A stretch of 64,000 nucleotides of DNA from Selaginella moellendorffii (lineage: Eukaryota; Plantae; Lycopodiophyta): NCBI RefSeq assembly GCF_000143415.4, contig NW_003314405.1, forward strand, positions 20,282-84,281, in the 5' to 3' direction. Below the pieces are notes generated by a model. It saw only the letters and a list, made by a program, of their open reading frames with translations. It was not told the DNA's origin and did not search any database. A program made the position numbers and the translations under genes. Below are positions 3,001-59,239 of this stretch, in pieces (position 1 is the stretch's first letter; each line of letters begins with the position of its first letter).

Positions 3001-3177
3001 AGATGGAGATGGAGGGATCAAAGAAGTGGAGCGCGGCAAAGTCAATCAAAGCCGGTGCCATTTCTCTCTCCTCTCAGATTTTTGCGCTCTCTCTCTCCTT
3101 CAAACTTTCTGTGTGTTTCTTTGGCTGGCAACAAAAACAAAGGCCACACATGGGGAGCTAAAGAGGGAACATGGACT

Positions 3178-3296
3178 CCCAGCGAACAATAAAAATAAGC
3201 ATTTTAGGGGGGGGGCCCAAAACCTCTTGTCACTGGTGGACCATGGGCCGATTCCGGAATATTCTCCGGCAGCGAATATTCTATTATTCGCTAGGG
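3178..3296. mobile_element. Candidate ~120 bp MITE-like element with imperfect terminal inverted repeats (second copy 22890-23013)
   Basis: Left end cccagcgaacaataaaaata versus reverse complement of right end ccctagcgaataatagaata. Internal palindromes. More divergent between the two segmental copies than its flanks. No clear target-site duplication. Confidence 0.35.
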
Positions 3297-4365
3297 TTAA
3301 GGCACCGGCATCTAAGCTATAGAGTCAAACCAATAATGGCACGATGTAAAAAAGAAGAACTACTAGCATTGTCATCCCCTTAGTTTTTGATTTCTAGGTT
3401 TTGCTACAGTGGCGTTCTCTCTTTTATTCTCTTTAACAAAGCCCAATGAATGGAGTTTCAAACGTCGTACCCCGCGTACTCTACGCGGGGTTGGTTGTCA
3501 CATAGAGGTGATCATGAGGAAGCACTACCAAGGATTGGAGGCGTATAATAAACTAGAGAGAGGCGTATGGTAGCGGTGGAGGCGTAGAGCGTACGGTGGC
3601 AGGTTCGAGTCCGGCGACGAGACCGCCGGTCCGTGGCTCGAGTCCGGCGCGGCGCGGCATCCGCTGGTCCGGGTTCGAGCCCGGCGTCCCCCAGTGGTCC
3701 ATTTTATGACCCAAACTGGATTCCGACAAACTTAAATTCGGGGAGCTGCTAAATCTGGCAACAAACCGGTTATAGCTAAATTTGAGGCAGATAGCAAGCC
3801 CGAAGGGCTGAAAAGGGCGTCCACGGTGGCTGGATTGTATATCCAGATGTAGCTGTGCCACGTGTCAAAAAGCCAGTGGACTTCCATGTCAGAAACCCGA
3901 CCTGGGGGAATTGTACGGCATTTGGATGGATAGCTATTAGCTAGTAGTTGGCTATGGCGAGGGGCGCTGCGCCTTTGCTCTTCTCTCTCTCGCCGAGCAA
4001 AGCGGGGATCTTGATGCGCTAGGGCATCGATTCTCGTTGATCGTGTTGGCAGCGCCTCGCAGCGGTGGCGGCATTGGGATTATGACGCTTGCCCGGGCAA
4101 TGTGTCGAATTTGAAGGCGCTGCGCCACTGTGTCACGGGCGCGATCGAGCGCGCGTCGACGGGGCATCGATGGAGCTAGGTAATCACACAAGGGGCTCGC
4201 GTTGAATCGAGCTTTTTCCTTCTTTCTCTCTGCTTCCCGTGATCTTCCTCGCTTTTCCCATTCGATCCTCGGCTTTCCATGGCGAATTGGAGGTAATCGC
4301 TCCGAAATATTCCCTCCTCTCGGAAGCGCTTGCTCGAAATATTTCCACTCCGATCGATCCGCAAG

Positions 4366-5373
4366 ATGGAGCTCCACGGCGGCGACCCGGACCTCTGCTA
4401 TGGCCTGGACGTGGATCTTGTGGGAGACAACGATGAGGCCTGGGCGAGGCGGTCGTCCAGGATCACGAGGATTTCAGCGACGACGACATGGACGTGGACG
4501 AGCTGGAGAAGAGGATTTGGAACGATCGGCTGCGGCTCAAGCGGATCAAGGACAAGCAAAAGGCCAGGGTCAACAACGCATTCTCCTCGAATCACTCGAA
4601 TCACAGCCATGGGCAGCAGCAGCAGCAGCAGCATCACGGCGGCCCAGCAGCGCAGCACCAGAATCTGGGCAATCTCCAGGAGCAAGCCCGGCGGAAGATG
4701 TTGCGAGCCCAGGACGGGATCCTCAAGTACACGCTCAAGATGATGGAGGTCTGCAAAGCCCAAGGATTCGTCTATGGCATCATCCCCGAGAAGGGCAAGC
4801 CAGTGAGCGGCGCCAGCAACAACAACCGCGTGATGGAAGGAGAAGGTCCGCTTCGATCGGAACGGCCCCGCCGCCATGGCCAAGTACGAGGGCATCTGCT
4901 CCAGATCCGGCGGCGGCGCTGGCCAGCTCTCCGCCGCCGCCCCGACGCCACACACTTTCCAGGAGCTCCAGGACACCACGCAATGCAGCACTGCGATCCA
5001 CCCCAGCGGAGGTACCCGCTGGAGAAAGGGGTGGCGCCGCCGTGGTGGCCGAGCGGCGACGAGGAGTGGTGGCCCGAGCTTGGGCTTCCAAAGGGGCAGG
5101 GGCCGCCGCCGTATAAGAAGCCCCATGATCTCAAGAAGGTGTGGAAGGTTGGAGTTGTCACTGCGGTGATCCGACACATGTCCCCGGATATCGGGAAGAT
5201 CAGGAAGCTCGTGAGGCAGTCCAAGTGCTTGCAAGACAAGATGACTGCCAAGGAGAGCGGGACGTGGATCTCGGTGCTCAACCAGGAGGGCAGTGCTCGG
5301 GGAATTTGATCGGGCAGCAGCAGCAGCAGCAGAGCCACCACCACCACCACCATAGCCAGGTGATTGTGATGAG
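4366..5373 (+). pseudogene. EIN3: Truncated, frameshifted EIN3/EIL pseudogene
   Basis: Same start ([17 protein letters not shown]) as the 24126 gene, but with a 1-bp loss near 4435 (gatgaggcc vs gatggaggcc) and several deletions ([16 protein letters not shown] and EALAR segments). Ends abruptly after HHHSQVIVM. Confidence 0.95.
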
Positions 5374-5420
5374 GATAACCCTTGAGACATTAGTATGAGG
5401 CTGCCTTGGATTGCTCTTCC

Positions 5421-6490
5421 AGGAAGAGGTCGGAGAGCAAGCACAGCGACCTCACAAAGTCAGCTTCAAGCTGAAGAAGGCGGAGGCTGTTGAAGAGATT
5501 GATCGAGTGTGAGGCAAGTTTTTAGAGGATCGTTCGAAGCTTTTGTGATCTAATCCTTGAGCAGCTGACAAGGGACAGCTCATGAGGGAAGGCAGAGCTC
5601 CTCAGAAAGTTCTTGTGTGTGGTGATTCCGGCAACGATTCTGAGCTCTTTGCCGTCAAAGACGTTTCTGGAGTGATCTTAAGTTCTTGAAGTCGATTGAT
5701 CACTCACTCACTCACTGACGATCTCAGGTCGGGAATGCGTTTGAAGATCTTACGCAGTGGTACCTTGATAATGCCAAAGACAATCCCAAGATCTTTCGTG
5801 GCACTGAAAGATGCGCTTCGGGAATCTCACAAGCTATCCGAGAGTTCAAGTTTGATCCTTGTGTTTCGCCCAGGGATGCCGACTTACTGAGCCAGCTCAC
5901 TGCTGGGGACACCGAAGGGTTGATCGGACGTGGAGTGGTGCTACTGTGTGAGATGGTTACGAGGCGAGGTTGAAAGCTCCCACGAGGTGTTTGAACACTT
6001 GAAAAGGCCAATGGTAAGTTCCTCGTGTTTAGTAGTTTTTGATGGTTGAGCAACGAAATGGCTGGCAGGCCCCTGACTCAACGCTGGGACTAGAAGACGA
6101 TCTTCGTAGAAGCGTTGAGATTCTACGTCCCCTCCACGGTATTTACAGGGGAAAGAACTTCTGTATGTGGGTTGATCGAATTCGTGCGACGAAGGTTGGG
6201 GACGTTACTTGGGTTGTCAAGTTTGATAAGTGGCAGCGAACGGGTACGTTAAGTTCTTCTTTCTGAGTCATATGCATTATTTTATTGCTGGTGCATTCCA
6301 GACGAAGAGCTGAATTATCGCTTGACAACCGCCGTGTGTTTCAATATGAGGTGGCGTTCTTATCGCTTTGTCTTGGTGGAGTTATTCAGCTTTGCTTCTC
6401 TTACAGGATGGCATGCCTTATGCGAGTGCATTACGAATCCACGAAACGTGGCTTGATGGTTATGCGGGAAGACCTTTGCTCCTAATGTAG
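5421..6490 (+). pseudogene. SPP: Sucrose-phosphate phosphatase (SPP) 3' fragment, degenerate, multi-exon
   Basis: Translated pieces EQAQRPHKVSFKLKK, VLVCGDSGNDSELFAV (HAD motif), VGNAFEDLTQWYLDNAKDNPKIFRGTERCASGI, WVDRIRATKVGDVTWVVKFDKW and RIHETWLDG are characteristic of plant SPP. Has an in-frame stop, deletions and no N-terminus. Confidence 0.85.
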
Positions 6491-9331
6491 GAGGCACAGC
6501 CAACGATAGGCGAAAAAATAAGCAGGGACGAGTCATCGTCCAGGTAAGCGTGTTAAAGTTCTCAGCTCTGGAATCTAATTTAGTGGATGCTGCTGTGTGT
6601 GCAGTGGCATACAAATTCCAGGTTTACTGAGATTGATATATGGTGAAGGAAAACGAGGGTATGTTTACACATTTATACTCATCCATTCATGGTGGTTGCT
6701 GTAGAACAGGGTGACATCAGGATCAAAAGCGAGAATCAAGCACACTCAGGTCGGAACGACAGGGATCAAACTCATCAGTAGCAACGGAGAGGTTTGTATT
6801 CTGGATTTAAATCGCGTGTCTCAGCAAGCTTTCGATGAACAGCAAATGGAAGGAGAAAAAACCCGGCGGGTTGGGGTCCACGTCGTCAATAAAACGATGC
6901 GGATCAATGTTAAAAACCCACAGACTGGTACGTGAAATGCTTTACAGCCAGAAGTTTTGGCTTTCTTACCGAAGAATTGTGCAGAATCTGGCAAGGAAAA
7001 GGAAAAGTATAATCGGGCCACTAAGAAGGTGGAGCATTGCGAATGGAAGATAAGCTAAAATGCATTTATTTTCGTTCTCTTTCTTTCTGCGTGGTATGGC
7101 GGACTTCTCTCAGCATATCCCGAGCTGCATATCCAGTGATTCAAAGCAAAGTTCTCACCCTTATACCCCCCTTTGATGATAGTCGGGCAATTATCACACC
7201 ACTATTCTTCCATGTCTTGTGTGTCTCTAGTCGGCCAACCAGAGTATAAAATGCGACCACCACCTTCATTGCAAACTCCCCCCGCTCCCTCTTCCTCTCG
7301 CAGAAGGAGAGAAGGCTCCAAGTTTTTGAGTGAGCAAAGGGCTCTCACCTCGAGAACTCGACAAGCTCTCTCGATTCCAAGCTTGGCTCCTTCGGTTATT
7401 CTTCTCCTCTTCGTCCCCTTTCAAGAGTAAGTTTTTTCTTTGCTTTCGTAGTTCTGAGCTTGCGATTCTTTCAGTTTGGTTGCGCCAGCAATCGGGACTC
7501 TGACGAAACAAAACGCTCCATAAGCGTGATTTCCAGAAAGAGTACGTGCCTCGCTTCCTTCCATGCTTTAGATGCTCAAATGATTCTTTCATTCCCTTTC
7601 GCTCGCATAAATTACTCGTGTTGACAAGAAAAGAGTTGAAGTGTGTGAGAGTGTGTGTAACTGTGTAACTTACGGCAGCTTCTTTTCATGTAGATTCCCC
7701 TGCATTCCCTGTCCTTTTGCTTCCATTTTTAGTTCCATAGGCCAATGGATCGCTTGCTTCTTCTCTCCTCTTGCACTCTGCTGCGTCAGTTTCACTCGGG
7801 AAAACGTGTTCTTATGTAATTGTTCGCTGGCCTCGGTGAGAAACGAAGGCTTTCCCCCTTTTTTCCAGAGATGATCTTAAGGCGCTGTTTTCTTGTGAGA
7901 ATTGGTGGTGCTCCTCCCCAGCACAATGCATTTGATGATTCCACGCCACCATTTGTCTCGTCATATGCTCACTGCCACTGTTCTTCCTCTGCTTCCAGAG
8001 CACAGGCGCCAGAAAAGTTTGAAGAGGCATTCTGAACTTGACACCATTTCCTCCAGGTATTTCATCTCTTGCTTGATCGTTTTCTTGACGATGTTCGCCT
8101 CAGGTAATCCAAGCTTTCAGACATGGTGAAGTTCCAGAAGCAGCTGGAGGGCCAGCTCGTCCCAGAGTGGCGGGTGAAGTACTGCGACTACAAGCAGCTC
8201 AAGAAAGTTGTCAAGAGAATCAAAACCCAGATCCTACATACCAAGAACCAGCAGCACAAGGTGTTCGATCCAAATGTCTTCTCGGTTGACAAGAGCAAGC
8301 TTGAAAACTTGCTGCAAAATCCCAGCGCCATCCTGAGCAGCTGCTGCGAACAATCCATATCCTCGGAAACGTCCATGGTCTGTGATGATGGTCTAAAACA
8401 CTTCAATATGATCAGGTTGTGCACAAGACGAGAATTGGAGATGGCGAGGATTTTTACGAGACAGAGCTGTTTGGAACTCGATCGGATCACGAAAAGAGCT
8501 TCTTTTTCGGCCTTGACGATCAGCTCAACAAAGTGGACAAGTTTTTTAGATGCAAGGAAGACGAGTACGATGCTCAAGCACGGCAACTTCACATCCAAAT
8601 GGAAGAGCTCATCCCTATGCAAGGTTCGTTCTAGCAGCCTCTAATTCTGTGGCACTTAACTTGGAATCGTTTGATCTCTGCCATGTTGTAGATGACGAAT
8701 CTCAGAGCTTGAAGGGGAGCCCGGCAACAAAGGAAAGGTTCAGCGAGCAGCCAAGATGCTCCAGACGGCCTTTGTCGAATTTTATCGTGGGCTTCGACTC
8801 CTAAGAAACTTCAGGTGAATGACCTCTATACGATTGATCCATGTTCTCAAAGTGTTGAAAACTTACTTGGCAGCTCCTTGAACATGATGGCATTCGTCAG
8901 GATCCGCAAGAAATATGACAAGGTACTTATGGAAAATGGAAAATTACTGCAGACTTCTAAAAAGGTTTTTTAAATTTTCAGGTGACTGGAGTCTGGCAGT
9001 TATCTCAAGATGGTCGAAAACTCGCATTTTGCAACGTCGGACAAGGTGTGAAGAAATTTTCCTTTGAGGGTCTTGCTGATGGAATTTCATTGCTCCAATG
9101 CACTCCAGGTAGTAAAGTTTATGGACCGCGTAGAGAGAGTGTTCACTCTGCACTTTACGAAAGGCAACTGAAAGCAAGCCATGGATATCTCAGGCCCATA
9201 CACTCTGCGAGCAATCATGGAAATATAAACTTTATCAGGCCCATACACTCTGCGAGCAATCAAACTTTATCCTGGGTAAGAGCAGGATATCCATTTCATG
9301 CATTCGGATCGTGGTTATTAATTAACCTTCT
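6413..9331 (+). repeat. Inverted duplicate of 60887-64000 (SPP last exon, intergenic region, PHO1 5' half)
   Basis: Reverse complement of 63961-64000 matches 6413 onward. ORFs 8123..8644(+) and 61548..62087(-), and 6711(+) and 63160..63507(-), are near-identical. Homology ends in the PHO1 intron at attaaccttct. Confidence 0.96.
8123..9275 (+). pseudogene. PHO1: PHO1 pseudogene (SPX-domain exons only)
   Basis: [28 protein letters not shown] start. Lesions: 1-bp deletion near 8720 (gagcccggc vs gagccccgg), premature stop aactga near 9168 (cga in intact copy), and a tandem duplication of tcaggcccatacactctgcgagcaatca. The EXS half is missing. Confidence 0.93.
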
Positions 9332-9483: not shown

Positions 9484-12052
9484 TTATCGTTTCTTCTTGC
9501 TGCGCTCTTTGGAAGGTTTGGTAGCCTCCTCTTCGGCGTTGTGGTCGGCTTCAAGTCTCACGAGCTGCAAATCAAACAATGCTGTTGTGAGGATTCCTTC
9601 TTGAGACACCACTTTACCTTGTCAAGGATGGGTTTAAGTTGTCTGTAGCGTGTCTTTGCCAAGTCAAATCCATCCTTCCTGAGCTCCTGATAGATGCAAA
9701 GAGCATGAAGAACGAGCGAAAGAAAACCTGCGTTGTCACCTTTCCAGTGTGTTGGGTGTGATCGTAAGGTGCCATTTGCCAATACATGATCGTCCAAGAG
9801 AAAAAATCTCTCAGCGTTTCTCCAGGCTGAAAGACAAATCAATAACAAAACAGGAAGATGAACTACTATCAGCACTCACTAAAAGTGTTTGTTGGGAATC
9901 AGCCAGGCCCAGCTCGGATCGATCTTTAATTTCCGTGCTTTCTGTGTCAGCTTTTTGCCTTCGCCCCTAAGAATAGCAGCTGCCTCTTCACAGTGACTCC
10001 ACTGCATCCTAGAATACAAAAGGAAACCGACAAGTTTTCTTACATCCTTCTTTTTTACTACCTCGTCATCGTCCTCTTCGTCTTTTCCTTTATTAATCGA
10101 TCCAGCATCACTGTTGTCACCATCAGTTTCGCCTTTCTCCTTACTAGCTTCAATCCACGCGCTTTGTGTTTCCTGCTTGAGACATTAGTATGAGGCTGGG
10201 TGATGGCTCGATCATACTAACCTCAATAATGCACTTCCACACATCGAAGGTCCAGCGAGGAAAGGTCGTCGTATCACTTTTTTTTTGCCGACTTCTTTCA
10301 TACCTCCATACAGAAACAAAGTATCCTTTCCAACGACCATTCCAGCATTCATTCTTCCACCAGGCAACAACCTTCAAGCAGAACGCTCAACGTTGAGACG
10401 CATTTTCCACATTTGGATCAGCCACTTTCTTCTGCTTTGGATGCACACTTAACCACTACACAATCTCAGATTGCCATACCTTAATCTTTAGGCTCTTTGG
10501 CTTGAGAAGCTCCAAAGGATACCTGCGAGCGATGGTGTTTAGATAATTTTAAAAAAATCGACGAGATACAAACCATCTGGAAAGCATATACATCTCGATC
10601 ATAAAAACGCTGTGCAGGGAATCACCTGCAAAAGACATTAGTTTTTCCAACGCATGCATTGAAACCGTACTCGTCAGCATCAACTACACCACCAAACAAG
10701 ATGTGGACAATAATCCTGCTCTTGGCCAGGAGCCAAACCGGATTTTTTCACCTTCACAAAACACATTGAAAAACTAAAACTCCAAACGAGAATGTAAAAC
10801 AAGCAAACCTTGTCCCACTCCCAATCCGTGGATCTAACGTCCACATATCTGCGAGCACTACACCTTTGTCGGATTGATCTTTGTCAGGGGCAGGCTCTTT
10901 GAAATAGCCACCGTACAAGAAAATCTAGAAAAGAAAAAATGTTCACAACACGCAAAACTATACTTTTAGTAGACAAATACCTCATCTAAATAAACAGCAA
11001 GCTGAGAACCAGCTCCAGCTGAAGGCCAGGCAGCTCCAAGCTTGGGTTTTATCTCTTGCCACTGCAAAAGGAAATCAGTTTAGTTGTTAAAAAACAAGGA
11101 AGAACGATGAGCGACAGAAACAAACCTTATAATCGTCTAAATCCAGCACTTAAAGATTATTGAAGTACCTGTGTCAAAAATTCAATACTAAACATCTACA
11201 CTGCTGAAACAGCCGACCTTTCTTCCCTCAGCGTGTCATAAAATCCACCAAATAGAATAAGTTTATGTTTCTGTGGCAAGAAAGAAAAAAATAAAGATTA
11301 TGTTTAGAAGTGCAATACATACCAATCTATGTCCGGAACGAGCACCTGGACAGCCTTTTAGTTTGAAGCTGCTCCAGCCACACATATTTGTGTTTAAATC
11401 CAGTCTCCATAAATCCTGCAAGAACTCTCTTGTAAGTCAGCTAGAAACACAGCTTATAGTGATGAAACCGAATTCACCACCTACACTGCCAAAATCAAGA
11501 GAAGTCCTGGATACCAAAACTGAAGAGCCAGTTTTCCACGCAACCCCCTGGTGAGCGCTTCTCGGGGGAGGAGAGTTTGGACTGGTGACAGGCTTCCACT
11601 CGTTCTTCTCGATGTTGTATCGGTAGACATCACCATAAACGTAAAGTCTAGCATAGCAAACACGAAGATCAAATCACCGTAGCGAAACTAACCACAAACC
11701 TTGTCACCGTTGTTAGTATTCACCTCCATAGACGATCAGCTCAGTGTCCTTGACTGGATTTACAGTCACCTGAAACGCAAGAAAAGAAGTCTAGAGAATG
11801 TGAGCTTCCAGAGTGGAGATTTCAATCGAATTCTTACGCACAGAGCAATTGCATTGTGGTGAAGGAGCTGCTACATTCTCATCGACATGAATTTCTGCTT
11901 CCTCCTCGTGGAGTTTCGCCTGACAAAAAGGAAAACAATTGAGAGGCCAGAGATTGCTTACCAAGATCGCATCGATATCATCCTCGTCTAACACCTTGTC
12001 GTGGCGACGAACTCGCTCGGTCTTCTCTTTTCCCTTTCCCCTTCTTCCCCAT
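9484..12052 (-). pseudogene. KLHDC4: Kelch-repeat / DUF4110 (KLHDC4-like) pseudogene, full span, multi-exon
   Basis: Exons give MGKKGKG(K)EKTER, EDDIDAIL, VDENVAAPSP, ELIVYGGEY, SPNSPPPRSAHQGVAWK, LFGGFYDTLRE, GKDTLFLYGGM, PGETLRDFF..YWQMAPYDHTQHTGK, ELRKDGFDLAKTRYRQLKPILD and end KKKR*. Frameshifts (extra A in exon 1, tactaacaac near 11715), stops and deletions. Confidence 0.9.
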
Positions 12053-12064
12053 TTTATCTGTTCT

Positions 12065-12072
12065 AAACCCTA
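12065..12072 (+). promoter_or_regulatory. Telo-box (AAACCCTA) in the 96-bp divergent gap between the KLHDC4 pseudogene and the Roco gene
   Basis: Exact aaacccta motif between the two start codons. Confidence 0.45.
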
Positions 12073-12148
12073 AACTAACTCGTGCTTACTTTCTTATCCA
12101 CAGCTGGGAGAAGTTTACTCATGATCACTCGATCTAGGGCAAACTTCC

Positions 12149-15100
12149 ATGGAGGAGGAGCGACGAGTGTGGATCGGCTGTGACTCTGTCAAGGAGATCA
12201 AGGAGGCTCTCGCAGCGGAGCGGGACAACAAGCGGCACTTCGATGCGATTATGTTTACTTGTGGGGAGATCTTGGAGAGGCTTCACTCATCCAAAGGTGA
12301 GTTTGTTGATGAGGTGAGTGCTACCGTCGAGAGGTTTGGAGGCACAGAGGAGGATCTGATTGGTGTGCTCAACTGCTGCATTTCAAGACCACGCTGGTTA
12401 GACAGGGCTCTGGATGTGGGAGATGGCAGTTCGTCTGCTGCTGCTGCTGCTCACATTGACATTCTCAAGGCCGCTTTGGTACCACAGCTCGACATCAGAT
12501 TCATCCACTTCGCTGCCAGGGTCGCTTGTAGGTTGGGCATTCCCAGTGATCGAATGCAAAGGGTGGCAGAGGGCATTGCTCCTCCTCAGCAGGGACAGGA
12601 TATTCTCCAGATTGAGATGCAGAGGTTTGCAAAGCTACTGACGATGACAGAGGAATTCAAGGTCTTGAAAGGGCTAGATTTCTATTGGCGAAGCGAAGAC
12701 ATCCTCACACCACCTCAGGAGCTTGAGTTGGCCTTTGCTCAGCTCGACTGCTTGACAGAGCTCGTGTTGGACAAGGTTGGGAACCCAGAGACTCTCCTTA
12801 GCCAACTCCTTAGGAAAGCAGGAAACAACTTGAAACGTCTCGAATTGCTGGGGAACAGGATGACAGTGGAAGGATTTGGGAAATTGAGTAGGGATCTGGC
12901 AAGTCAGGAGTGCAAGGTGGAAGAGTTAGTCATCTTCGACGATGAGGGCATTGCCAAGGAAGGGTGGGAACAGGCATTTCAGAATGGCATTTGCAATAAG
13001 CTAGTAAAACTGACGGCATCGTTTCCAGAGGGGGCAGGTGAAGCACTCTTCAAGGCACTCACGAGTCCAAGCTGTTCGCTGCAAAGACTATACCTATCTT
13101 GGGAAACTGATCCTGGAGTGTTGCCATGGGTATGCAAGGCTCTTCAGGAGGGCACCAGCCTGTCAGTTTTAGGTTGCCGAAGTGAGGACCTGAGCAATGC
13201 AACGGGCCTGGGTGAGGCCCTGAGCAGCGCTAAGTGTGGCTTGGAGGAACTCTGCGTTCCACTTTATCCAGGTGATGGTGGTGGATGGTTGGGCAAAGCG
13301 CTACAAAATCCCAATTGCAAGCTGATCAAGCTCAACCTTGATTGTCCCAACGAGGGAGGAGGAATGGTCTGGGACAGCAGTCTGTGGTCAGCTCTCTCAA
13401 GTCCACATTGTAAGCTGCGCCATTTGGAAATATGGGGTAGCGCGGGAGGAGAAGATGAGTTAACGTTGGAGTTTGCCGAGGGCATAGAGAAGAGCCAACT
13501 GGAGCATTTGGGTATATCGGAGTGCAAAATCACGAATGGGGAGCCCTTTTGGAAAGCTATCACCAGCTGCAAGTCTCTGAAAGCTTTGACTTTGTCATGT
13601 CACTGGGAGCTGCCATGGAGGTGCCTTTTGGGAAGCAGCATTGAAGACTTACATATTCAATTTAAGTCAGAAATTGAAAACCTGGAAGATCTTTGCCGGT
13701 TGCTGGGGGATGCAAAATGCAAGGTGCGCAGATTCAGGGCTCCTTTTCTTACAAGTGATGCACAGAAGAGACAAATTCTGGCTGCCCTGGAGGAAAACTA
13801 CCAAAGCCTCGTGGAAGAGCTTGATCTAGGCAATGATTCCGAAGCTTCTGAAGCTTTCAAGCAGAGGTGTTCTGGTCTTTTAGAGCGGAATGCAATCTTC
13901 CAGCAGAGTGCATTCAAAGACTTTGACAACCCGTCAACAGCAAAGCTCTTCTTGTGTGGTGCTAGCAGGGTTGGAAAGACCACAATAAAAAAAAACCTCT
14001 GCCGCAGAGTGTCTTGGTTTCCATCATGTCTCCAAAGGCATGCTTCAACAGCAGGCATTGAGCTGCAACCACTTGTCTATGCGACCACCAAACAAAAGCT
14101 GCTCATTTGCGACCTGGCTGGACAGGAAGAGTTCCATGCTTTCCACCAGTACTTTCTCAGAGGAAGTGAGAACGATCTCTTCTTGATCGTATGCAAGGTG
14201 GAGGATGACAATTGTGACGTTTTCAAGCAGAATTTGGTTTACTGGCTGAGGTTCATCGCTTCACGTCAATCAGCCTCACCCAAAAGGAAGCCCAGGGTCT
14301 TGATTGCCTCGAACTTTTTCACTCCAGAACCCGACTTTGACCCAAAGGAGGTGGTTTCTGCAATAATCTCCGACAAAGGCTATGAGCAAGTACTTGAGTT
14401 TGGGACAGATCTTTGTTTTGAGGTGGTGGCCACTCAAGTGAAAGATTTAAGGGGGATAAAAACCATGTTGGGGAGTTGCTTGGAAGAACTGCTGTCAGCC
14501 CAGCAAAAAATACCACGGGAATGTCTCAAAGCAAAGAGGAAATTGGTACAAGATCCAACTCACAAGAAGGTCATACCCCTAGAAAAAGTTGGCAAAATCC
14601 TCTTGCCTCACAGGAGTTCCAAGAATGTTCTCAAATTCGTCTTGCAATTTCTACATGATTCTGGTGATGCAATTTACTTTGGCTTGGGACATGAAGAGGA
14701 CGACATTGTGTCTCAATTTGTCATCTTAGATGTCCAATGGTTTATGAGGGATGTGGTGCAACTCTTCATACATACTGAGACAAGCAAATTCAAAAGTCAA
14801 ATGGAAACACACAGAGTTAAACATCAGTTGAAGCAACAATGTGGGAACCAAGACAAAATAGTGGAGTACATTCTTGGAGTGCTCCATGAGATGGGAGTGA
14901 TATTGCCTTGGGATGATAAATGGGATGGGAATTGGCATAACTTGCCCAAAGAGTTGATAATGCCAACATTATTGCAAGAAGAATATTCACCTCCAGAATG
15001 TTTATTGTCACCCTCAGTGCCAATTGACACTCAAAAAAACCACAACTACTGGGGCAGGAGGTTTGAATGCAAAGACAAGGACTTGAAATTGTTTCCTGCA

Positions 15101-16521
15101 AGTATTTTCACAAAGATCCAAGTTAAACTTCACAAATTAAGCAAGCAAGGTATCAAGCTTGGGAATGGATGGGTGGCTTTGAAAGAAAACCTTATCAACA
15201 CAATTGTGAGAGTTGGGGGAGACACAGACAATTGGAAAGATAGGCAATGGGTTGATGTCATCATTTACTACCCAAAAGAGGTAGAGAATACACCAAGGCC
15301 GGATTTAGAAAAGGAAGCTCAAGGATGGATGGAAAAAATTAGAAATTGCATTATTGGGGTATGTATGGAGGATTGCCCATCTTTGGAAATTGAAGAAAAT
15401 GTGATGAGACGTGGTTATGTGTGGAGAAGGATACTAAATAATGTGGGCAAACCAAAATCATGGGATGCAGTTATTTATCCACTAAAGAAAGTCAAATGTG
15501 AAGCAAGAGAAAGCGGTCTAGACTACTCTCACACTTGGAATGATTCACATGAAGCAGAGAGTTGGGATGTGATTAACAATTTGAAGGTCTCAGATGAGAA
15601 TGCTTTGGCCAAGTTATTGATGCCTAATGAGCAAAAGTATGAAGTGGTGAATAAGTTTGTTGAGCTTCATAAACTCTTAAAGGACTATGAGGAGGTTGGA
15701 GAAGTCACAATTCCCAAAGCATCATCAAATGTTGTTGAGTTTCCAAACATTGAAGACCCAAAACTCGATGCAATTTTTAGATATTTTGATAAGAAGTTTG
15801 ATAAAATGGAGAACCGGTTTGACAAGTTGGATACAAAACTTGATAACATTGAAGTAAGCCTTAACGAGCTCAAGAATGGACTCAAGTCTATCATGGATAA
15901 AGTGAATGCAATCCATACAACGTGTTTTCAAGTATTATTGAAATTGGAGACAGATTGCCCAAAATATCCATATATTCTTGATGAGAATAATAGGTGGAAA
16001 AATTACAGCAAAATATTGGGAACACATGTTAAACTTCACTACTTGTGTGAATGGCCTCAAGGAACTTTTAAAGGTCATCAAGTGAAGAGTTCTGTAGGTG
16101 TTGAATTGGATCTCCCACCAAACTGGCTCAAGAAATTTGCTCCAGTACTTAAACATACATTGATCCTATTATTTATTGGGGCTAAAGTTGGAGGACATTT
16201 TGCTGGTGTTGGAGAAATAATGAATGCAATGGTGGATGAGATCAAGGGAAGCCTCATAAGCTTTTTGGATTCATGTCTTCTCAAAAACAAGTTAACTACA
16301 AATCCCAAAGCAGAAGATGTGCAAGAGATATTTAAGCTAGTGACAATTACAATTGGGAAAGAAGAAAAACAGGAGACAATCATGGAAAAACATTTTGCTC
16401 TTCATCCCACAATCTTAGAGGGAAGAAAAATATGGGTCTGCAAAGGTATTTAATATTTAAGTTTTTAGTTTTTTCTAACAAACATCATTTTAAAGCAGAT
16501 CATCAATCTAAATTTTTATGA
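12149..16521 (+). CDS. TORNADO1-like Roco protein (LRR-Roc-COR-coiled coil); long exon 12149-16445, predicted 53-bp intron 16446-16498, terminal exon 16499-16521
   Basis: 1434-codon ORF. RI-like LRRs (LTSPSCSLQRLYL, LSSAKCGLEELCV, LQNPNCKLIKLNL, LSSPHCKLRHLEI). P-loop GASRVGKTT at 13958, switch I STAGIEL, G3 DLAGQEEF at 14111. COR-like LQFLHDSGDAIYF..VILDVQWF. Heptad coiled coil at ~15790-15915. C-terminal KLHYLCE and WVCK|DH as in TRN1-type proteins. Confidence 0.9.
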
Positions 16522-17540
16522 GGTGGTTTGGTAAAACGAAGGTAAATAAACATGCTTTATATAGTTATTACTATATGTCTTTGGTATGATTGGGGTATTT
16601 TTTATAGCAGAAGTTAAGGAGGTAAGTTTGCATTATAACTCCAAATTATTCTTTCCTGTTTATTCTAATGTTTCAAGTTCATTTCAGTGTTGAATTTTTA
16701 ATGCTTTAAATGAAGGAAAAACTACCAAATAATTTATTTTTTATCTTATAATTTAGATGATAAAACAATATATATTTACAAAGGTATTTTATATTGAAAT
16801 GTATCCATGCTTTTAGTTTTATCTAACAGAAGCTATGTAGGGTATTTAAAGTAAATCATTAATCATATGTTTTGTTTTTCATCCCATAATCCTGGATGAA
16901 AGAAAAATATGGGTCTACAAAGGTATTTAACATTTAAGTTTTTGGTTTTATCTAACAAAAACCATTCTAAATCAGATCATCAATCTATATTTTTACGAGA
17001 TGATTTGGCAAGATGAAAGTAAATAAATATGCTTTATAAAGTTATTGCTATATGTCTTTGGAATGATTGGGCTATATTTTGTAATAGAAGTCAATGAGGT
17101 AAATTTGCATTATTGCTTTAAAATATTATTTCATGTTTATTCTAATGTTCCAAGTTTATTTCAGTGTTGAATGTTTAATAATTCAAGTGAAGGAAAAGCT
17201 AGTCAAATGATGTCATATTAATCATATTTTGATAAGAAGACTAAAATTGTGAAAGAAATTGATCAAAAGACAATCATGGCCAAATATTTTAATATCCATC
17301 CTATAACCTTGGATTATAAAACAGTATAGATTTACAAAGGTATTTTACATTCAAATATAACTATGATTTTAGTTTTATTTAACGAAGACTATGTAGGGCA
17401 TTTTTACTATGATTATGCTACATTTCTTGATATAAGTCGATGAGGTATCTTTGCATATTGCTATAAAATAATTTTTATATTTATTCTGATGTTTCAGTAT
17501 TGAATGCTTTAAAGAAAAGCTACTCAGATGATCTCATGTT
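16360..17540 (+). repeat. Degenerate tandem array of the Roco C-terminal exon/intron module (about 4 copies, A-B-A-B, ~480-550 bp period)
   Basis: catcccacaatcttagagggaagaaaaatatgggtctgcaaaggtattt (16403) recurs at ~16880 (catcccataatcctggatgaaagaaaaatatgggtctacaaaggtattt), with more diverged copies at ~16740 and ~17295. All end in caaaggtattt. Confidence 0.85.
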
Positions 17541-17549: not shown

Positions 17550-20500
17550 TTTTCATTTTGGCATCTTTGGTAAAACAATTCTAGGAATAAAGTTAATTAT
17601 TATTAATAAACCTTTTGAGGTAATGCATTTCAAAACTAAATACAAGTGCTTAATTGTTATTTATCATCACATACTGTAGGAGATAACTTTATATTATCTT
17701 TACCAACTTCAACTTATTTTTTAAATTAATATTTAGCTAAAATATGTTACAAACTACACTTTAAAGACTTATCAAAATTGTCATTGTTCACAATTCCATT
17801 TACTTACTAAAGTTTATATAGAAATCTGTTTACTCTCCTCAATTACATATATTTACCATCCCATAAAACCAAACATTGTATTGTGTTTTAACTATTGTAA
17901 ACAAGTGCTTGAATGACAATAATTTAACAGCAAAAGGTTTTTGAGTGTCTGTAGATATTGTTTAGAAAATACAAAATATGTATTAAACACCACTAATTAT
18001 TATTTTAAAAATGAAGTATAAAGATATTTTTTACTATGAAATCATTTGCAACACATCAAGTATTACTTGAGAGTAGCTCTAATAAAAATGCTTTCTAAAT
18101 ACTTATTTTGAACATTCTAGTAAATATTTCATTTTTAAAAGGTTGTTTAATTTTAAATTGTTTTCTTTCTTGCTAGTTTCTTTACAAACATTAACTTATA
18201 TTATTTATGGCACTATAATCTCCTGAATTTGGGCTTTCTAGAAGGTCATCTAACCCAATACTATTTAAAGATGCTTAATCTCAAATAACCTAATACTTAT
18301 AACTAATTGGAACAAAGAGTACATTTCTATATTTAAAATAATATTAATAATTTTTTAAGTTATTATCTTTGGTTGTTTATAATCCATCATGTTTTTTTGC
18401 AAGAGTAGGGCTCTTCTAAGAGCCTTACTCTTTTAACACCTTACCCCTCGAGTTGAAATTAAAGTAAACTAAACCTATTAAATATCAATCTTAACATGTG
18501 GTGTGATTTTTTTAATCAACTAATAGAGTCACACCTTACACTTTTCTAATACCAATATAAGTTTTTAAATTTGGACTTCATAAAAAGTTATCTAGCCATT
18601 TGGGTATCCAAAAGTGGAACTAGACACATAGAGCATTTAGACCAAGTACAAAGTTGATGTGGTTACAAAAACACATCTTAAAGTTAGGAAACACCCAAAT
18701 TAATATCAGGGCCTATAGAAATTATAAGTGAGACTCCTTTAGATGATCCTAAAGTAAAAAAAAATTAATCATTTATAAAGATGTCGAAAGCATGGTGATA
18801 GTTGCAATCACCACCACCATAACAAAAATGACAAGCCATAATTATAGTATACTCCTATTTACATTGCCTTGATAAGCATTTATGACATGTAAAAATTCAA
18901 AAATAAACTTTATCGAAACCTTTGCAAACTCAACCAAGTTTATGAGCCAAATGAAGAAGTTTGGCTTAGAGATGTTTGCCTAAGATCACTCCCAATTTTT
19001 ATCTCATCTTTGTTTAGAGAACCAACATCTCAATCATTTATTATACCTTGTAAATTGACAAGAAAAAGCTTCAAATTATCATTACTATACTGGTTTATAT
19101 GTTTTTCTCAAATTTTTGGACTAGTATTTAGTATTGGGTTGCTAAGATTTTATGCCAAGCTAAGTAATTTCTCAAGAGAAAGATTTAAGTGAATTTAAAA
19201 TAAACTCTTTTTAGACAATAACTTACAAAAAAAGAAAGGGTAAATCACTATATTATTTATATATGGAACTTGTTAAAGAGGACCAGTTTGATAAAAAATA
19301 CATTATCCAACTTAGGGCTTTATATATTGGTTGAGTGGAGCTAGATTATCAAGCAAAGATGAACATTTGGCTAAAGCTTTGATTTATTAATGGTTTTGTC
19401 GAGATTGGGCAAAATGTTATTATAAATTTATAGTTCATTTTGTAAGTGATTGGATTAATCTTTGTTACTCTTTACAGTTGGACAATCTCAAAAGTTCTCT
19501 CTTTTTTGCTTTTGAAGGAGAGCTTTGTTGGTGCTTGTACAAGTAAGTTGAGTAAAACAATCCAAACACGAAACGAATCCACCTGACCGCTGCCAGGGAT
19601 ATCAAAAAATTGTAACTTTTCTTATAATTATTTTCATCTATGTATCATTTACAAAAATTACACTCTAAAAATCTCACTTGCAAGAGGTTGCTTACCATAT
19701 CACCAAAGTTGTTAGTAACCTTGTGTAAAATTCATAGCTTCTCCTTAAATATCAATAATGGATTGTATTTCATTTTCATATCCAATATGGAAACATTTAT
19801 GAATGCCTTGTGGTACTAAGTATTTATCAAGTGACCACTTAATTTTAGATTCAATGTTTGTATTACAAAGAAAAAAAAGCAAGAGAAGGAATACTTGGAT
19901 TTTATGCTCCAAAAGTAATAAGAGTGAGAGTAGCACTTTTGGACTAACGAAAATATCCAAACCAAATAACACTTGAGATTCATAGATTGTCCTTGAAAGC
20001 CAAGATATCAACAAAAAGTAGTGATCACAAGAATAATAGGATAAGTGGTTGCATTTGAAATGTTGGAAATGAGTTGAGACTACATTCTCGAAATAAGTAC
20101 TATAAATAGAGAATGTTATTATTGTAGATTTGCATGTTTTGCAAAGGTGATACATACTTGTATGACATTTCTCCAAGAAAACCATAAATAATATCTAAAG
20201 AGTTTTGAGAAAAAACTTATCTTTCACATTTGTAATTTCCAAGTATCATGTATGTTGTATTTATATAGTTTCCTATACGAGCCACAATTTTCAAGATTGT
20301 GAATAAAAGTAGTAAGCCATTGTTTTTTAGGAGAACAATTCCTTGGAAAGCAATATCTAAAGCAAACTGTTAATAATTATCATTGCATTTCCAAGTGATG
20401 AATATGGTTAAGTGTTTGGATTGCCATTGAATAATCTAAGCCACATTTTGGTTGTAATGAGATTGGATATTATATGGTTAAAGTTAACCTTGGTGATATT

Positions 20501-21450
20501 TCCAATTTGAAGTGTTGACTTCTCATGATTGTCAAGAAAAAGTTTTGAACTTATTAATTTAAAATAATCTTGGTAAAACTTTAGAAGTTGGTCCCAAAAT
20601 TAATATTGAAATCTACAACAATTCTAATTATCAAATTTTTACCTATAACATGGAATCAACAATTGCATCTTTGGCTAAGGGAGTATACCCTTCAAAAAAA
20701 GTGAAGAACATCACAATCAAAAACTATATATTTAACAAGAAGTAAAAGAATGATTTTTCTAGAGAAGAGAAATGAATAAATTTATTGCATCCCCACTTAT
20801 TTTGTATTATATCTGTGAGCAAACTTTGATTAGCACAAGTTAAGAAACTATTCACTTGGTTGTAAGAGCACATCACACTACTCACTTGGCCATCTTAAAT
20901 GTAACTTTGGAAAAGTAGATTATAAAAGTTAATCAAGTTTTATTCACTCACCTATGAAAAACTTACGAGTGAAAGCATTTCACTCACTACATATTGAAAA
21001 GCAAAGAAAAAAAGTTGAAAGGAAGAGAGAGAAGTTGAAATTATACTTTTGCATTGAAGTAATTATAAACTCTTGAATTTGAAATTCCCGGGAAGTCACC
21101 TAACCCAAAGACACTTAACCCCAAATATCCCAAGACCTTTAACTGATTGGAAAAATGCTTGGAAAATAAAATGTATTTTTATTCATGAGCCCTTTCCCTC
21201 TATATTTGAACCCTATTAATTGTCTTTCAAGTTGTTCTCTTTAATTGTTTATAGTAATATCAATCCATTTATGGATAAGCTTGTGGTTTTGTAACTATAG
21301 ACAAAATTCTAGAACATAACACAAAACTTTACATCTCTAATCAAATAAAAAAGTGTGGAGTTAAATGAAGCTACAGTGAGTATCAACAATGGAAAAATTG
21401 TAGTAGCTAGAGTAAAATTGCCAAACTCTAGTGAGTAAGAATTTTTCTCT
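17550..21450. mobile_element. AT-rich, CpG-poor decayed element or gene relic of unknown family (right part duplicated at 1-1750)
   Basis: Sharp drop in GC and near absence of CpG. Broken protein-like frames on + (e.g. RNLCKLNQVYEPNEEVWLRDVCLRSLP, GEQFLGKQYLKQ). No recognisable transposase or RT motif. Confidence 0.35.
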
Positions 21451-24400
21451 TGTCTTTTTCATATGGCAGGGTGACACTATGCGATTCAGATGAAGCATCC
21501 TCAGAAAGCCCAGGTAAACATAGTGAATTTCCACTTGCGTTGCAAGAATGCCTTGATTATAAGCACATCTTGCTGTTTTTCTTCAGGACTAGTACTTGTG
21601 ATCTTGCAAATTGCAATTAAAGTATTTCGATTTAGTCAGGTATAGTTGCCGCAAAACATCCTCCTCTGCTGCCGCCGCAGTGCAAGTGGCCAAGCAGCAC
21701 AAACATTCATTCCCAACAAACACTGATTAGTTTACTCGTTTTGAAACATTACCAGATAGATAGTGTGGTGCTGGATTCAGGGGAGGTGCTCGTAACAATC
21801 ACGAAAGTTCCAGTTTGACTCCAAACATCTCCCGTGTGATCTTCCACTTGCAAGCGATGTCTTGTTCTTCATGTATCAATCAAATGGAAGGGAAGTTGCT
21901 ACCTCCAAAACTCGTTTGTTTCTTCTACAACAGTGTCGATACGATACACGGAGTAAAAAAGGAATCAATCCAAAAAGAGGATGTCCGTAAGATCACTACA
22001 GCTTAACCTCACTCTCGCAACTTGGTTCGGTGGTCTCTTCATGGAGGAATCCATGGCAGAAAGAGAAGGATCGTCAAGTCCGAGCTTTTGCAAACGAGGG
22101 AGCGATCGAGCGAAACGACGGCTGCCGCACACTGTGGATTGATCGATAAGTCTCTAGCTGGAGACACGGAGAATCCACCGAGCATCTCGACAGGAACTTT
22201 CATGATCATCATCACGCGCTTCAAGCACGGCCTAGCTTAACATCAACGACTTTGGGCTTGGCAAAGTTCTTTATGTCTCTCTCTCTCTCTCTCTCTCTCT
22301 TGCTGCTTGCTCGTGGATTTTTTAACGAATTTCTTCGTCTTCCGTGTGCTGCCGGGCTTGAGGAAATCTGTCCGAGAAACTGGGCATGTATCTTGTTTCC
22401 AGTTTGGGTTGCTTCGGACGACTTTCGTGCCGGTCGCCGGAGGAAAAAGAATTGTCATGGAAAAAACAATGGAACCTGTAAGCGCTCTGGACAACACGTT
22501 AGCTCGTCACATCCTTGGCAAAAAGCTTAGACTTTGCTGGATGATCCGCGGCCTTGATCTCAGGCTAATGCCGTGTCAGCGAGAGGAATTTAAAGACTTT
22601 TCCAGTCGACAAGAAGTGGTGGAGTGATCGGGCAGTGATCCATCGACTTCGAGCAAAACATGACATGGATCGAATCGTCCGAGTCCGAGTAGAAAAAGAA
22701 AAAGGACGAGATGGAGATGGAGGGATCAAAGAAGTGGAGCGTGGCAAAGTCAATCAAAGCCAGTGCCATTTCTTTCTCTCCTCTCAGATTTTTGCGCTCT
22801 CTCTCTCTCCTTCAAACTTTCTGTGTGTTTCTTTGGCTGGCAACAAAAACAAAGGCCACACATGGGGAGCTAAAGAGGGAACATGGACTCCCAGCCAACA
22901 ATAAAAATAAGCATTTTGGGGGGGGGGGTGGGGCCAAAACCTCCTGTCACATGTGGACCACTGGCCGATTCCGGAATATTCTCCGGCAGTGAATATTTTA
23001 TTATTCGCGAGGGTTAGGGCACCGCCCGAGTAAAAGGTGTTGCAATAGAGTCAAACCAATAATGACACGATGTAAAACAGAAGAACTATTGTCATCCCCT
23101 TAGTTTTTGATTTCTAGGTTTAGCTACAGTGGCGTTCTCTCTTTTATTCTCTTTAACAAAGCCCAATGAATGGAGTTTCAAACGTCGTACCCCACGTACT
23201 CTACGCGGGGTTGGTTGTCACGTAGAGGTGATCATGAGGAAGCACTACCAAGGATTGGAGGCGTATAATAAACTAGAGAGAGGCGTATGGTAGCGGTGAA
23301 GGCGTAGAGCGTACGGTGGCGGGTTCGAGTCCGGCGACGAGACCGCCGGTCCGTGGCTCGAGTCCGGCTCGGCGCGGCATCCGCTGGTCCGGGTTCGAGC
23401 CCGGCGTCCCCCAGTGGTCCATTTGATGACCCAAACTGGATTCCGACAAACTGGCAGCTTGGACAAAAGTGATTTAAATTCGGGGAGCTGCTAAATCTGG
23501 CAACAAACCGGTTAGCTAAATTTGAGGCAGATAGCTAAATTGGCCGTAAGCCCGAAGGGCTGAAAAGGGCGTCCACGGTGGCTGGATTGTATATCCAGAT
23601 GTAGCTGTGCCACGTGTCAAAAAGCCAGTGGACTTCCATGTCATAACCCGACCTGGGGGGAATTGTACGGCATTTGGATGGATAGCTATTAGCTAGTAGT
23701 TGGCTATGGCGAGGGGCGCTGCGCCTTTGCTCTTCTCTCTCTCGCCGAGCAAAGCGGGGATCTTGATGCGCTAGGGCATCGATTCTCGTTGATCGTGTTG
23801 GCAGCGCCTCGCAGCGGTGGCGGCATTGGGATTGTGACGCTTGCCCGGGCAATGTGTCGAATTTGAAGGCGCTGCGCCACTGTGTCACGGGCGCGATCGG
23901 CGAGCGCAGCGCGCGTCGACGGGGCATCGATGGAGCTAGGTAATCACACAAGGGGCTCGCGCTGAATCGAGCTTTTTCCTTCTTTCTCTCTGCTTCCCGT
24001 GATCTTCCTCGCTTTTCCCATTCGATCCTCGGCTTTCCATGGCGAATTGGAGGTAATCGCTCCGAAATATTCCCTCCTCTCGGAAGCGCTTGCTCGAAAT
24101 ATTTCCACTCCGATCGATCCGCAAGATGGAGCTCCACGGCGGCGACCCGGATCTCTGCTATGGCCTGGACGTGGATCTTGTGGGAGACAACGATGGAGGC
24201 CTGGGCGAGACGGTCGTCCAGGATCACGAGGATTTCAGCGACGACGACATGGACGTGGACGAGCTGGAGAAGAGGATTTGGAACGATCGGCTGCGGCTCA
24301 AGCGGATCAAGGACAAGCAAAAGGCCAGGGTCAACAACGCATTCTCCTCGAATCACTCGAATCACAGCAGCCATGGGCAGCAGCAGCAGCAGCAGCAGCA

Positions 24401-25207
24401 GCATCACGACGGCCCAGCAGCGCAGCACCAGAATCTGGGCAATCTCCCCAAGCACAAGCAATCCCAGGAGCAAGCCCGGCGGAAGAAGATGTCGCGAGCC
24501 CAGGACGGGATCCTCAAGTACATGCTCAAGATGATGGAGGTCTGCAAAGCCCAAGGATTCGTCTATGGCATCATCCCCGAGAAGGGTAAGCCAGTGAGCG
24601 GCGCCAGCGACAACATCCGCGCGTGGTGGAAGGAGAAGGTCCGCTTCGATCGGAACGGCCCCGCCGCCATCGCCAAGTACGAGGCGGAGCACGGCATCTG
24701 CTCCAGATCCGGCGGAGGCGCTGGCCAGCTCTCCGCCGCCGCCCCGACGCCACACACTCTCCAGGAGCTCCAGGACACCACCCTCGGATCGCTTCTCTCG
24801 GCGCTAATGCAGCACTGCGATCCACCCCAGCGGAGGTACCCGCTGGAGAAAGGGGTGGCGCCGCCGTGGTGGCCGAGCGGCGACGAGGAGTGGTGGCCCG
24901 AGCTTGGGCTTCCAAAGGGGCAGGGGCCGCCGCCGTATAAGAAGCCCCATGATCTCAAGAAGGTGTGGAAGGTTGGAGTTCTCACTGCGGTGATCCGACA
25001 CATGTCCCCGGATATCGGGAAGATCAGGAAGCTCGTGAGGCAGTCCAAGTGCTTGCAAGACAAGATGACTGCCAAGGAGAGCGCGACGTGGATCTCGGTG
25101 CTCAACCAGGAGGAGGCGCTGGCGAGGCAGTGCTCGGGGAATTTGATCGGGCAGCAGCAGCAGCAGCAGAACCACCACCACCACCATAGCCAGGTGATTG
25201 TGATGAG
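19662..25207 (+). repeat. Second copy (with intact EIN3) of the segment duplicated at 1-5373
   Basis: Same co-linear match as for 1-5373. Confidence 0.95.
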
Positions 25208-56566: not shown

Positions 56567-56753
56567 GCACGGATCGTGGATCCAAGAACACGATGCATGG
56601 GATGTTCGTTTCGACGACGGTATATCAAACGGGTTGCATTGATTCGTTCCAACTTCCAGCGAGAGTTCTTCCAAGTTCTTCCAGGGCCATGGTTTTAGGA
56701 TTTGAGAAAATTTGATTGGTTTGTGGGTTTGAGATTCATAGAGTGTCATTCAT

Positions 56754-56846
56754 GCCGGCTATGGTGGACATCTCTCTTTTTCTGATATTTCACTTCTCTT
56801 GGGGAGGGATTTTATTAGAGCGAGCCAGATGTCCTCCATAGCCAGC
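56754..56846. other. 93-nt fold-back (pre-miRNA-like or MITE-like hairpin)
   Basis: gccggctatggtggacatct pairs with agatgtcctccatagccagc (18/20). The inner arms pair further with G:U. Confidence 0.5.
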
Positions 56847-59230: not shown

Positions 59231-59239
59231 TAGCATGTT

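Follow-up and report, generated by a model that had tools for sequence, protein, structure and literature searches.

A clustered Roco GTPase gene of Selaginella moellendorffii with a hypervariable leucine-rich repeat face as a candidate recognition receptor

Selaginella moellendorffii has been reported to carry only about two nucleotide-binding leucine-rich repeat receptors (NLRs) (PMC3782705), and given this near absence of NLRs the way in which the plant recognises adapted pathogens is an open question. The stretch of its genome analyzed here, 64,000 nucleotides of contig NW_003314405.1 (positions 20,282 to 84,281 of the forward strand; hereafter the window), holds a gene, LOC9646473, that joins leucine-rich repeats (LRRs) to a Roc-COR GTPase, and the question raised by this locus is whether such a protein could act in recognition. 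The gene is an intact, expressed LRR-Roc-COR (Roco) GTPase gene of S. moellendorffii. With moderate confidence we adopt as the most likely working model that it encodes an intracellular recognition receptor belonging to a diversifying, clustered Roco family.

The gene lies at window positions 12149-16445 and 16499-16521 on the + strand. An open reading frame (ORF) of 1434 codons extends from 12149 to 16453 (+), and its product matches the NCBI entry "uncharacterized protein LOC9646473 isoform X1" at 100% identity throughout the ORF. The first coding exon (12149-16445, +) runs from aa 1 to the first base of codon 1433 and is followed by a 53-nt intron (16446-16498, +), with GT at 16446 and AG ending at 16498, that is evident both in the sequence and as a splice joint in contigs of public sequencing runs. 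Splicing adds seven more codons in frame in the last coding part (16499-16521, +), which closes with a TGA at 16519-16521 so that the protein ends in ..WVCKDHQSKFL. The acceptor used in NCBI isoform X1 is 3 nt upstream of the one supported by the contigs and yields one extra Ala. An intact LRR-Roc-COR gene resembling TORNADO1 (TRN1) had been proposed at 12149-16521 in an earlier reading made from the sequence only, and the ORF, the splice joint and the match to LOC9646473 uphold that proposal.

The LRR domain (aa 173-553, 12665-13807, +) consists of 13-14 ribonuclease inhibitor (RI)-like repeats, in register and 21-31 residues long, that extend from aa 173 to about aa 553 with the consensus ..L.S..C.L..L.L.... 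All of these repeats were recovered by a hidden Markov model (HMM) built on the gene's own LRRs, and a Pfam scan of the protein gave no LRR family above threshold. A sequence search of the PDB returned the LRR domain of NLRP1 as a marginal match (E about 0.01) and, to aa 1208-1237, a stretch of the YadA adhesin (E about 0.2); these two were the sole matches apart from GTPases. The Roc GTPase domain (aa 599-710, 13943-14278, +) was found by Pfam PF08477 (41.1 bits against a cut-off of 27, E=2.4e-10), and the best PDB sequence matches were Roc chains of LRRK2 (E about 1e-3). In the motif alignment the P-loop GxxxxGKT, the switch-I Thr and the DxxGQ motif are kept. At the G4 position the protein reads NFFT (aa 719-725, window ~14303-14323), so that the guanine-contacting Asp is gone and neither canonical form, [NT]KxD or THxD, is present; G4 is not a defining feature of the ROCO family, and its loss bears on mechanism.

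The COR region (aa 789 to about 1150, 14513-15598, +) was recognised from COR-A at aa 789-923 (32.2 bits, E=1.2e-7), just below the 35.3-bit cut-off, and COR-B gave no match. The region aligns without a break to relatives, including TRN1, where COR-A and COR-B are both above cut-off, and the precomputed Pfam annotation of the LOC9646473 protein includes PF16095. Beyond it lies a long single helix or coiled coil (aa 1204-1264, 15758-15940, +), seen as helix 54-114 of the segment 1151-1440 in AlphaFold model m2032abfe4027. That model, built with 62 aligned relatives, has a mean pLDDT of 80 and shows the 61-residue helix followed by a compact alpha/beta domain; in a VIA-align comparison with 48,161 chains it met generic coiled coils only. 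Of the parts listed in the sequence-only reading, the RI-type LRRs (about 14 there, with an NLRP-like consensus; 13-14 here, with a weak NLRP1 match), Roc and a long coiled coil are found, and for COR the score of COR-A lies below cut-off. A Pfam scan of the protein at E<=0.1 gave no match to NB-ARC or NACHT, and no recognised death or signalling domain (TIR, CC, RPW8, PYD, CARD) was found in it. The coiled coil and the conserved C-terminal domain are candidates for the output of the protein.

The evidence that carries the receptor model comes from the pattern of variation among copies of the gene. When six copies are aligned, the count of residue types at each column is periodic: it peaks 4, 6 and 7 positions after the first Leu of LxxLxLxx (means of 3.4, 2.8 and 2.6 residue types, respectively), and the three leucines hardly vary. 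As a-priori sites we took the five x of xxLxLxx. Pooled NG86 counts gave these sites a dN/dS of 2.07, or 2.5-4.3 when only intact copies were considered, compared with 0.88 for the rest of the LRRs, 0.52 for COR and 0.42 for the C-terminus. By maximum likelihood (ML; GY94, IQ-TREE), omega at the a-priori sites was 3.96, and a likelihood ratio test against omega of 1 gave 2dlnL of 23.1 (p=1.6e-6). Other LRR sites had an ML omega of 1.35, which is not significant, and COR plus C-terminus had one of 0.68. The contrast is sharper still at 39 hot codons (x5/x7/x8), picked after inspection of the data, where dN is 0.45-0.76 versus a dS of 0.06-0.09 in the remaining gene (ratio 7-11, Fisher p<=1e-12) and amino-acid identity is 37%, versus 90% elsewhere. 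Judged from these alignments, the copies diverge almost only at predicted solvent-exposed positions of the LRR beta-strands, and COR and the C-terminus appear to be held by purifying selection. Both diversifying selection on LRR surface residues and variation in copy number, features that the sequence-only reading expected of a receptor family, are thus present.

The family itself comprises at least eight gene models, which share 83-91% identity and lie on three scaffolds in clusters formed by segmental duplication, with at least four copies inside about 150 kb of GL377608. Seven copies were inspected as DNA: the big exon is intact in four, LOC9646473 and three others, and the remaining three are broken, one by a frameshift at about codon 91, one by a stop in frame at codon 568, and one by an LRR deletion together with a frameshift. 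An extra dead copy on GL377737 (L004, 18264-21341) survives as three fragments matching aa 1-315, 535-826 and 1282-1434; it lies about 4 kb downstream of the gene for P0006 and is an internal-deletion derivative. This mixture of clustered, intact and dead copies matches the multi-copy behavior of resistance-gene clusters that had been suspected from the sequence. Copies also exchange sequence, as indicated by the nearest paralogue of LOC9646473, which switches every few hundred bases along the gene, and by the near-identical Roc core, where aa 601-700 differ from every copy by 1-5 bases per 300. The Roc part has a low dS (0.026), which accordingly reflects homogenization and not age.

These same data invite a quite different explanation, namely that the family is decaying or functionless and that its LRR variation stems from relaxed constraint, patchy conversion or local mutation bias. 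Such a view can draw on the three disabled copies among seven and the further fragment, on the shifting nearest paralogue as a sign of conversion or recombination, on a fairly high omega over all non-LRR sequence (0.59 by NG86, 0.82 by ML), and on a dS that reaches about twice the gene mean at the x positions of the LRR strands. However, relaxation cannot yield an omega well above 1, such as that found at the a-priori sites, and the variation follows a strict period and leaves out the structural leucines. Furthermore, a frame of 1434 codons has stayed intact in four copies, COR and the C-terminus bear the marks of purifying selection, and the gene is spliced and transcribed. We therefore regard decay as improbable and retain the receptor model.

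Evidence for transcription comes from public sequencing data. Twenty public runs contain the stretch, and contigs of four runs from four studies were aligned to 11700-17100. The 53-nt GT..AG joint was present in the contigs of all four runs, which were taken as cDNA because of it. Contigs with zero mismatches span 15468-16408, a region in which each of the known paralogues has 2-47 differing bases per piece; thus the LOC9646473 copy, or an identical allele, is transcribed, and the gene is not silent in all tissues. Long contigs over 13715-14982, which covers the linker, Roc and much of COR, bear the letters of other copies and are not copy-specific.

The resemblance to TRN1 raises the possibility that these genes are the Selaginella orthologue or co-orthologues of that gene, which is reported to have a developmental role (Cnops et al. 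2006, as cited in PMC4104024), and would serve in leaf and vein patterning. To place LOC9646473, aa 575-1440 were searched by phmmer exhaustively against 1.84 billion representatives. This gave 11 proteins at E<1e-30, and organism and protein names were obtained for 30 of the matches. The closest kin are S. moellendorffii "ROCO family" proteins (D8T252, D8T9Q3/XP_002979346, LOC9652566) and several proteins of Adiantum. Remoter kin come from the liverworts Riccia, Marchantia and Calypogeia, the moss Ceratodon, and, as the one angiosperm protein, TRN1 of Ipomoea, which matches from Roc to the C-terminus at E=5e-10. Angiosperm TRN1 gives a score for Pfam LRR_6 (RI type), and in TRN1 both COR-A and COR-B are above cut-off. 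Searched in the opposite direction, blastp from TRN1 found its best matches in Ceratodon and fern proteins rather than in Selaginella ones.

Two trees, a quick one of 70 Roc-COR regions and a careful one of 38, agree; no algal sequence is among the taxa. Every Selaginella sequence falls, together with some Adiantum sequences, in a lycophyte-plus-fern clade with support of 100/99. This clade is sister to a liverwort clade plus a TRN1 clade (94/89), the latter containing Ipomoea TRN1, several Ceratodon genes and other Adiantum genes. Uniting Selaginella with the TRN1 clade, a grouping that was named only after inspection of the tree, costs 149.7 lnL units in the approximately unbiased (AU) test (p about 5e-108). 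Since both types of clade are present in ferns, the split between them is old, and by these trees the lycophyte-plus-fern clade parted from the TORNADO1 clade early in land-plant history. The land-plant Rocos thus form at least three old clades, with mosses and ferns carrying several TRN1-clade genes apiece. A review (PMC4104024) states that, among plants, ROCO genes are restricted to flowering plants; that statement is contradicted by the Roco matches in the lycophyte Selaginella, the ferns Adiantum and Ceratopteris, and the bryophytes Marchantia, Riccia, Calypogeia and Ceratodon.

The notion of a TRN1 orthologue is not without support: the order of parts is shared (RI-type LRRs, Roc, COR, C-terminal domain), the C-terminal domains are homologous, and NCBI names some of the copies "protein TORNADO 1". 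Additionally, no Selaginella member of the TRN1 clade surfaced by phmmer or in a word search with a fern TRN1-clade query, searches whose reach is too small to establish absence, and this leaves room for the role to have been taken over. Against these points stand the placement of the genes in a different, well-supported clade that coexists with TRN1-clade genes in ferns, the rejection by the AU test, the multiple copies with pseudogenes, and an LRR-face omega well above 1. The G4 motif of the TRN1 clade is also not kept. Aligned TRN1-clade members have THxD or TRxD and the liverwort members NxxD, whereas the G4 Asp is absent in every aligned Roco of the lycophyte-plus-fern clade (NFFT, NLFS, NYFE and others). 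What we see is therefore not a single-copy TRN1 orthologue under purifying selection, since it lies in another clade with at least eight models and an omega of about 4, and a developmental TORNADO1 identity is very improbable. The strong divergence from TRN1 pointed out in the sequence-only reading is confirmed. Its suggestion of a lineage-specific family stands in part, for the multi-copy cluster of Selaginella, and fails in its strict sense, as ferns belong to the same clade.

A side observation on the fern members of this clade concerns two Rocos of Adiantum nelumboides (P0009 and P0158) that are 95% identical. They have 54 differences, 33 of which fall in the first 400 residues, many of them directly after LxxL in LRR strands. 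The hypervariable LRR face may therefore extend to ferns.

A further contrast emerges from two loci that share the same order of neighbors, aldose epimerase, pseudouridine synthase, Myb, Roco and SPX-EXS, on GL377709 (L001) and GL377608 (L002). Their flanks are 99.2-99.8% identical in 500-nt bins (about 99.4%), and identity falls to 90-97% exactly over the Roco gene, with a dN of 0.53 at the hot codons. We read L001 and L002 as two haplotypes of the assembly, on the basis of the collinear, 99.4% identical flanks and because the S. moellendorffii assembly of Banks et al. 2011 is reported to contain two haplotypes. Old balanced alleles would account for the divergence between them, and so would conversion from paralogues. 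The positional haplotype counterpart of the LOC9646473 copy may be P0008 or P0007.

High divergence of alleles within near-identical flanks fits balancing selection, and it could also be read as a sign that the receptors recognise something other than pathogens: self and non-self, partners in reproduction, symbionts, or endogenous elements such as transposons. Indeed, the same signature of selection and copy number fits any recognition system shaped by an arms race or by balancing selection. However, no feature of the sequence points to such roles, and by analogy the clustered LRR genes with hypervariable xxLxLxx of plants and brown algae, which have been linked to defence (PMC3341825, PMC11378527), would favor pathogens as the target. 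We consider recognition of non-pathogens unlikely, although less so than decay of the family.

Under the working model of a recognition receptor, the hypervariable concave LRR face would bind a fast-changing ligand, most plausibly pathogen-derived. Binding of the ligand would then alter the Roc-COR switch in its nucleotide state and its dimer state, and the signal would leave the protein via the coiled coil and the conserved C-terminal domain. Ligand binding, the immune role and, by analogy with other Rocos and with NLRs, the mechanism of the switch are proposed here. The sequence-only reading had put the gene forward as a candidate for an NLR-analogous receptor; its NLR-like evolution is borne out, and an immune role is what we infer from it, with support from the analogy to NLRs and to the LRR-ROCOs of brown algae (PMC3341825, PMC11378527) and from the scarcity of NLRs in S. 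moellendorffii (PMC3782705).

Several points weigh against this model. Loss of the G4 Asp across the clade, as read from the alignments, means that normal GTP-specific switching is not assured. Conversion among copies may distort or inflate tree-based tests of omega, though the pairwise counts agree with them, and the 39 hot codons were chosen with the data in view, which does not apply to the a-priori xxLxLxx set. The RNA nature of the sequencing runs is a guess, and it is the spliced joint that argues for cDNA. At >=97% identity no contig covered the copy-specific 5' LRR part at 12243-12966, leaving a full-length transcript unsupported; unitigs may break up at the hypervariable sites and so produce this gap. 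Finally, introns beyond the stop codon might expose the mRNA to nonsense-mediated decay.

One of the closest known systems, alike in architecture, is TORNADO1 (TRN1/LOPPED1). Both are plant Rocos with a common root relative to the outgroup, and they share the order RI-type LRRs, Roc, COR and a C-terminal domain with LHLxCE..G.H and W.C..H. Unlike TRN1, which is single-copy, the Selaginella genes are multi-copy with pseudogenes and have a hypervariable LRR face; moreover, the N-terminal 172 residues of LOC9646473 are not in TRN1, and the G4 Asp lost in Selaginella is kept there as THxD.

With regard to mode of evolution, a parallel is found in the brown algae Ectocarpus and Saccharina, where LRR-ROCO genes form expanded families with positively selected concave LRR sites and have been proposed as pathogen receptors (PMC3341825; PMC11378527). 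The Selaginella genes likewise form an expanded LRR-Roc-COR family under positive selection on the concave LRR face, a likeness that is stated apart from descent. In contrast to the algae, which shuffle exons of one LRR each, LOC9646473 has all of its LRRs in one 4.3-kb exon, diversifies them by point changes and conversion between paralogues, and has RI-like repeats of 26-31 residues. Like the family, NLRs (NB-ARC/NACHT-LRR) have hypervariable xxLxLxx residues, lie in clusters in which copies arise and die, and have alleles that diverge strongly; the LRRs are also of the RI/NLRP type, as seen in the weak NLRP1 match. They differ in that the Selaginella proteins use a Ras-like GTPase, Roc-COR, as switch in place of a STAND ATPase, and in that the LRRs of the Selaginella proteins precede the switch. 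The LRR-Roc-COR core is also found in cyanobacterial Roc-COR proteins and in animal MFHAS1, with only remote sequence similarity, and neither is known to diversify.

In the literature searched, no paper treats the Rocos of land plants as receptors that form a diversifying family. What the present analysis adds is the position of the gene in the Roco tree, the contrast between haplotypes, the homology of the C-terminal domain and the status of its fold, the missing G4 Asp and the evidence from transcripts. A clustered family of LRR-GTPases whose evolution bears the full signature of resistance genes is a concrete candidate for pathogen recognition, and it would extend the idea of LRR-ROCO proteins as immune receptors from brown algae to land plants. 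More tentatively, as a broader hypothesis that is possible but doubtful in its full extent, lycophytes and ferns may carry intracellular immune receptors in which a hypervariable LRR sensor is coupled to output via a Roc-COR GTPase instead of an NB-ARC ATPase. In NLR-poor Selaginella, much of effector recognition would fall to this class, with the C-terminal Cys/His domain as signalling or execution module and the G4 loss as the mark of a changed switch.

The C-terminal alpha/beta domain (aa 1265-1439, 15941-16521, +, with the intron inside it) was characterized through alignments, a structural model and its homology to TRN1. Modelled alone (aa 1258-1440), it has a pLDDT of 85 and a pTM of 0.82, with about six strands, a long helical hairpin with a Gly-rich turn, and a terminal beta-hairpin that bears W.C..H. 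The HYLCE..GH and WVCKDH motifs and the Gly-rich helical hairpin are located in this domain. A phmmer search with aa 1256-1440 directly reached the C-terminal end of Ipomoea TRN1 (E=3e-6), and iteration recovered the C-termini of essentially all plant Rocos collected, plus many shorter outgroup proteins. Across the domain alignments one Cys is invariant, and a Pro, Glu, His, Trp and Cys are nearly so (LHLxCE..G.H ... W.C..H). These conserved Cys and His residues suggest a predicted C/H/C/H site for zinc binding.

No Pfam family covers this domain in any relative scanned. Foldseek of the 1151-1440 model against the PDB gave no match, the best VIA-align score of the domain model was Z=4.0 with no clear relative among solved structures, and feature searches of the ESM Atlas with the C-terminal part returned nothing usable. 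A shape search of the ESM Atlas with the domain model, on the other hand, found a streptophyte LRR-ROCO cluster among its matches and also cyanobacterial Roc-COR clusters, with a TM of 0.63-0.65 over 155-166 of 183 residues. On the strength of this model, the fold seems to have accompanied Roc-COR since before plants. As the domain is common to plant Rocos and has cyanobacterial shape matches, the module is ancestral and no novelty of LOC9646473. The motifs that the sequence-only reading described in this module are real, then, but the module is not special to the gene: it occurs in TRN1 and in bryophyte and fern Rocos, and its shape recurs in cyanobacterial ones. That TRN1 bears a conserved C-terminal domain outside Pfam is useful for the poorly understood TRN1 itself.

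The N-terminal region (aa 1-172, 12149-12664, +) is specific to the family: it has no Pfam match, and local and word searches gave no relatives outside the family, its only relatives being the eight copies. In ESM Atlas feature searches the N-terminal part gave weak LRR-type leads only, with scores <=0.79. The idea that it is a run of degenerate LRRs found no support, as the HMM of the gene's own repeats misses aa 1-160. An unassigned N-terminal part had been noted earlier at about 180 residues; it is still without assignment by these searches, at 172 residues.

Downstream of the stop codon, further GT..AG joints at about 16619/16686, 16781/16839 and 16920/16974 indicate a 3' untranslated region (UTR) with introns. 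Within it lies a tandem duplicate of the 3' end of the gene (16867-17403, +), recognised from the sequence, from blastn to paralogue 3' ends and from the joints. The duplicate comprises the junction of the last exon and intron, and one contig steps back by 424 nt. A putative 5' UTR joint at 11997/12129 (GT..AC, in a single contig) was judged unreliable.

The surroundings of the gene also bear signs of rearrangement. A tblastn search of the window with the Roco protein found no other Roco piece, living or dead. The rearranging locus described in the sequence-only reading is thus real, while its dead duplicates are of EIN3 and SPX type and not of Roco; nor is the Roco the only intact gene, since intact EIN3-like, TyrRS and KCS ORFs accompany it. 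The EIN3-like ORF (24090-26657, +) encodes 856 aa with a full EIN3 DNA-binding domain, and a truncated EIN3 duplicate (4202-5444) lies upstream of the Roco. Segments 1024-5275 and 20347-25099, of about 4-5 kb, both match one stretch of L003, and the window therefore carries that segment twice; the intact EIN3-like ORF and its truncated duplicate are located in these two copies. Also upstream of the Roco, an SPX ORF (8123-8641, +) has only the first ~60 residues of the SPX domain and is probably the dead remnant of the PHO1-like SPX-EXS gene found next to other Roco copies. The TyrRS ORF (28357-29769, -) is a single exon of 471 aa, of bacterial or organellar type with tRNA-synt_1b and S4, and apparently intact; the intact KCS ORF lies at 54668-56563.

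Similar neighbors recur elsewhere in the family. Three GL377608 copies are preceded by gene fragments of EIN3, S6PP or SPX type, one of them also by a Kelch-like gene, and EIN3/S6PP/SPX chimeric gene models similar to those of the window precede Roco copies of that scaffold. The neighboring locus on GL377709.1 overlaps the window at 55548-64000 with 100% identity, and about 1.5 kb past the window end a paralogue of the Roco gene lies on the opposite strand.

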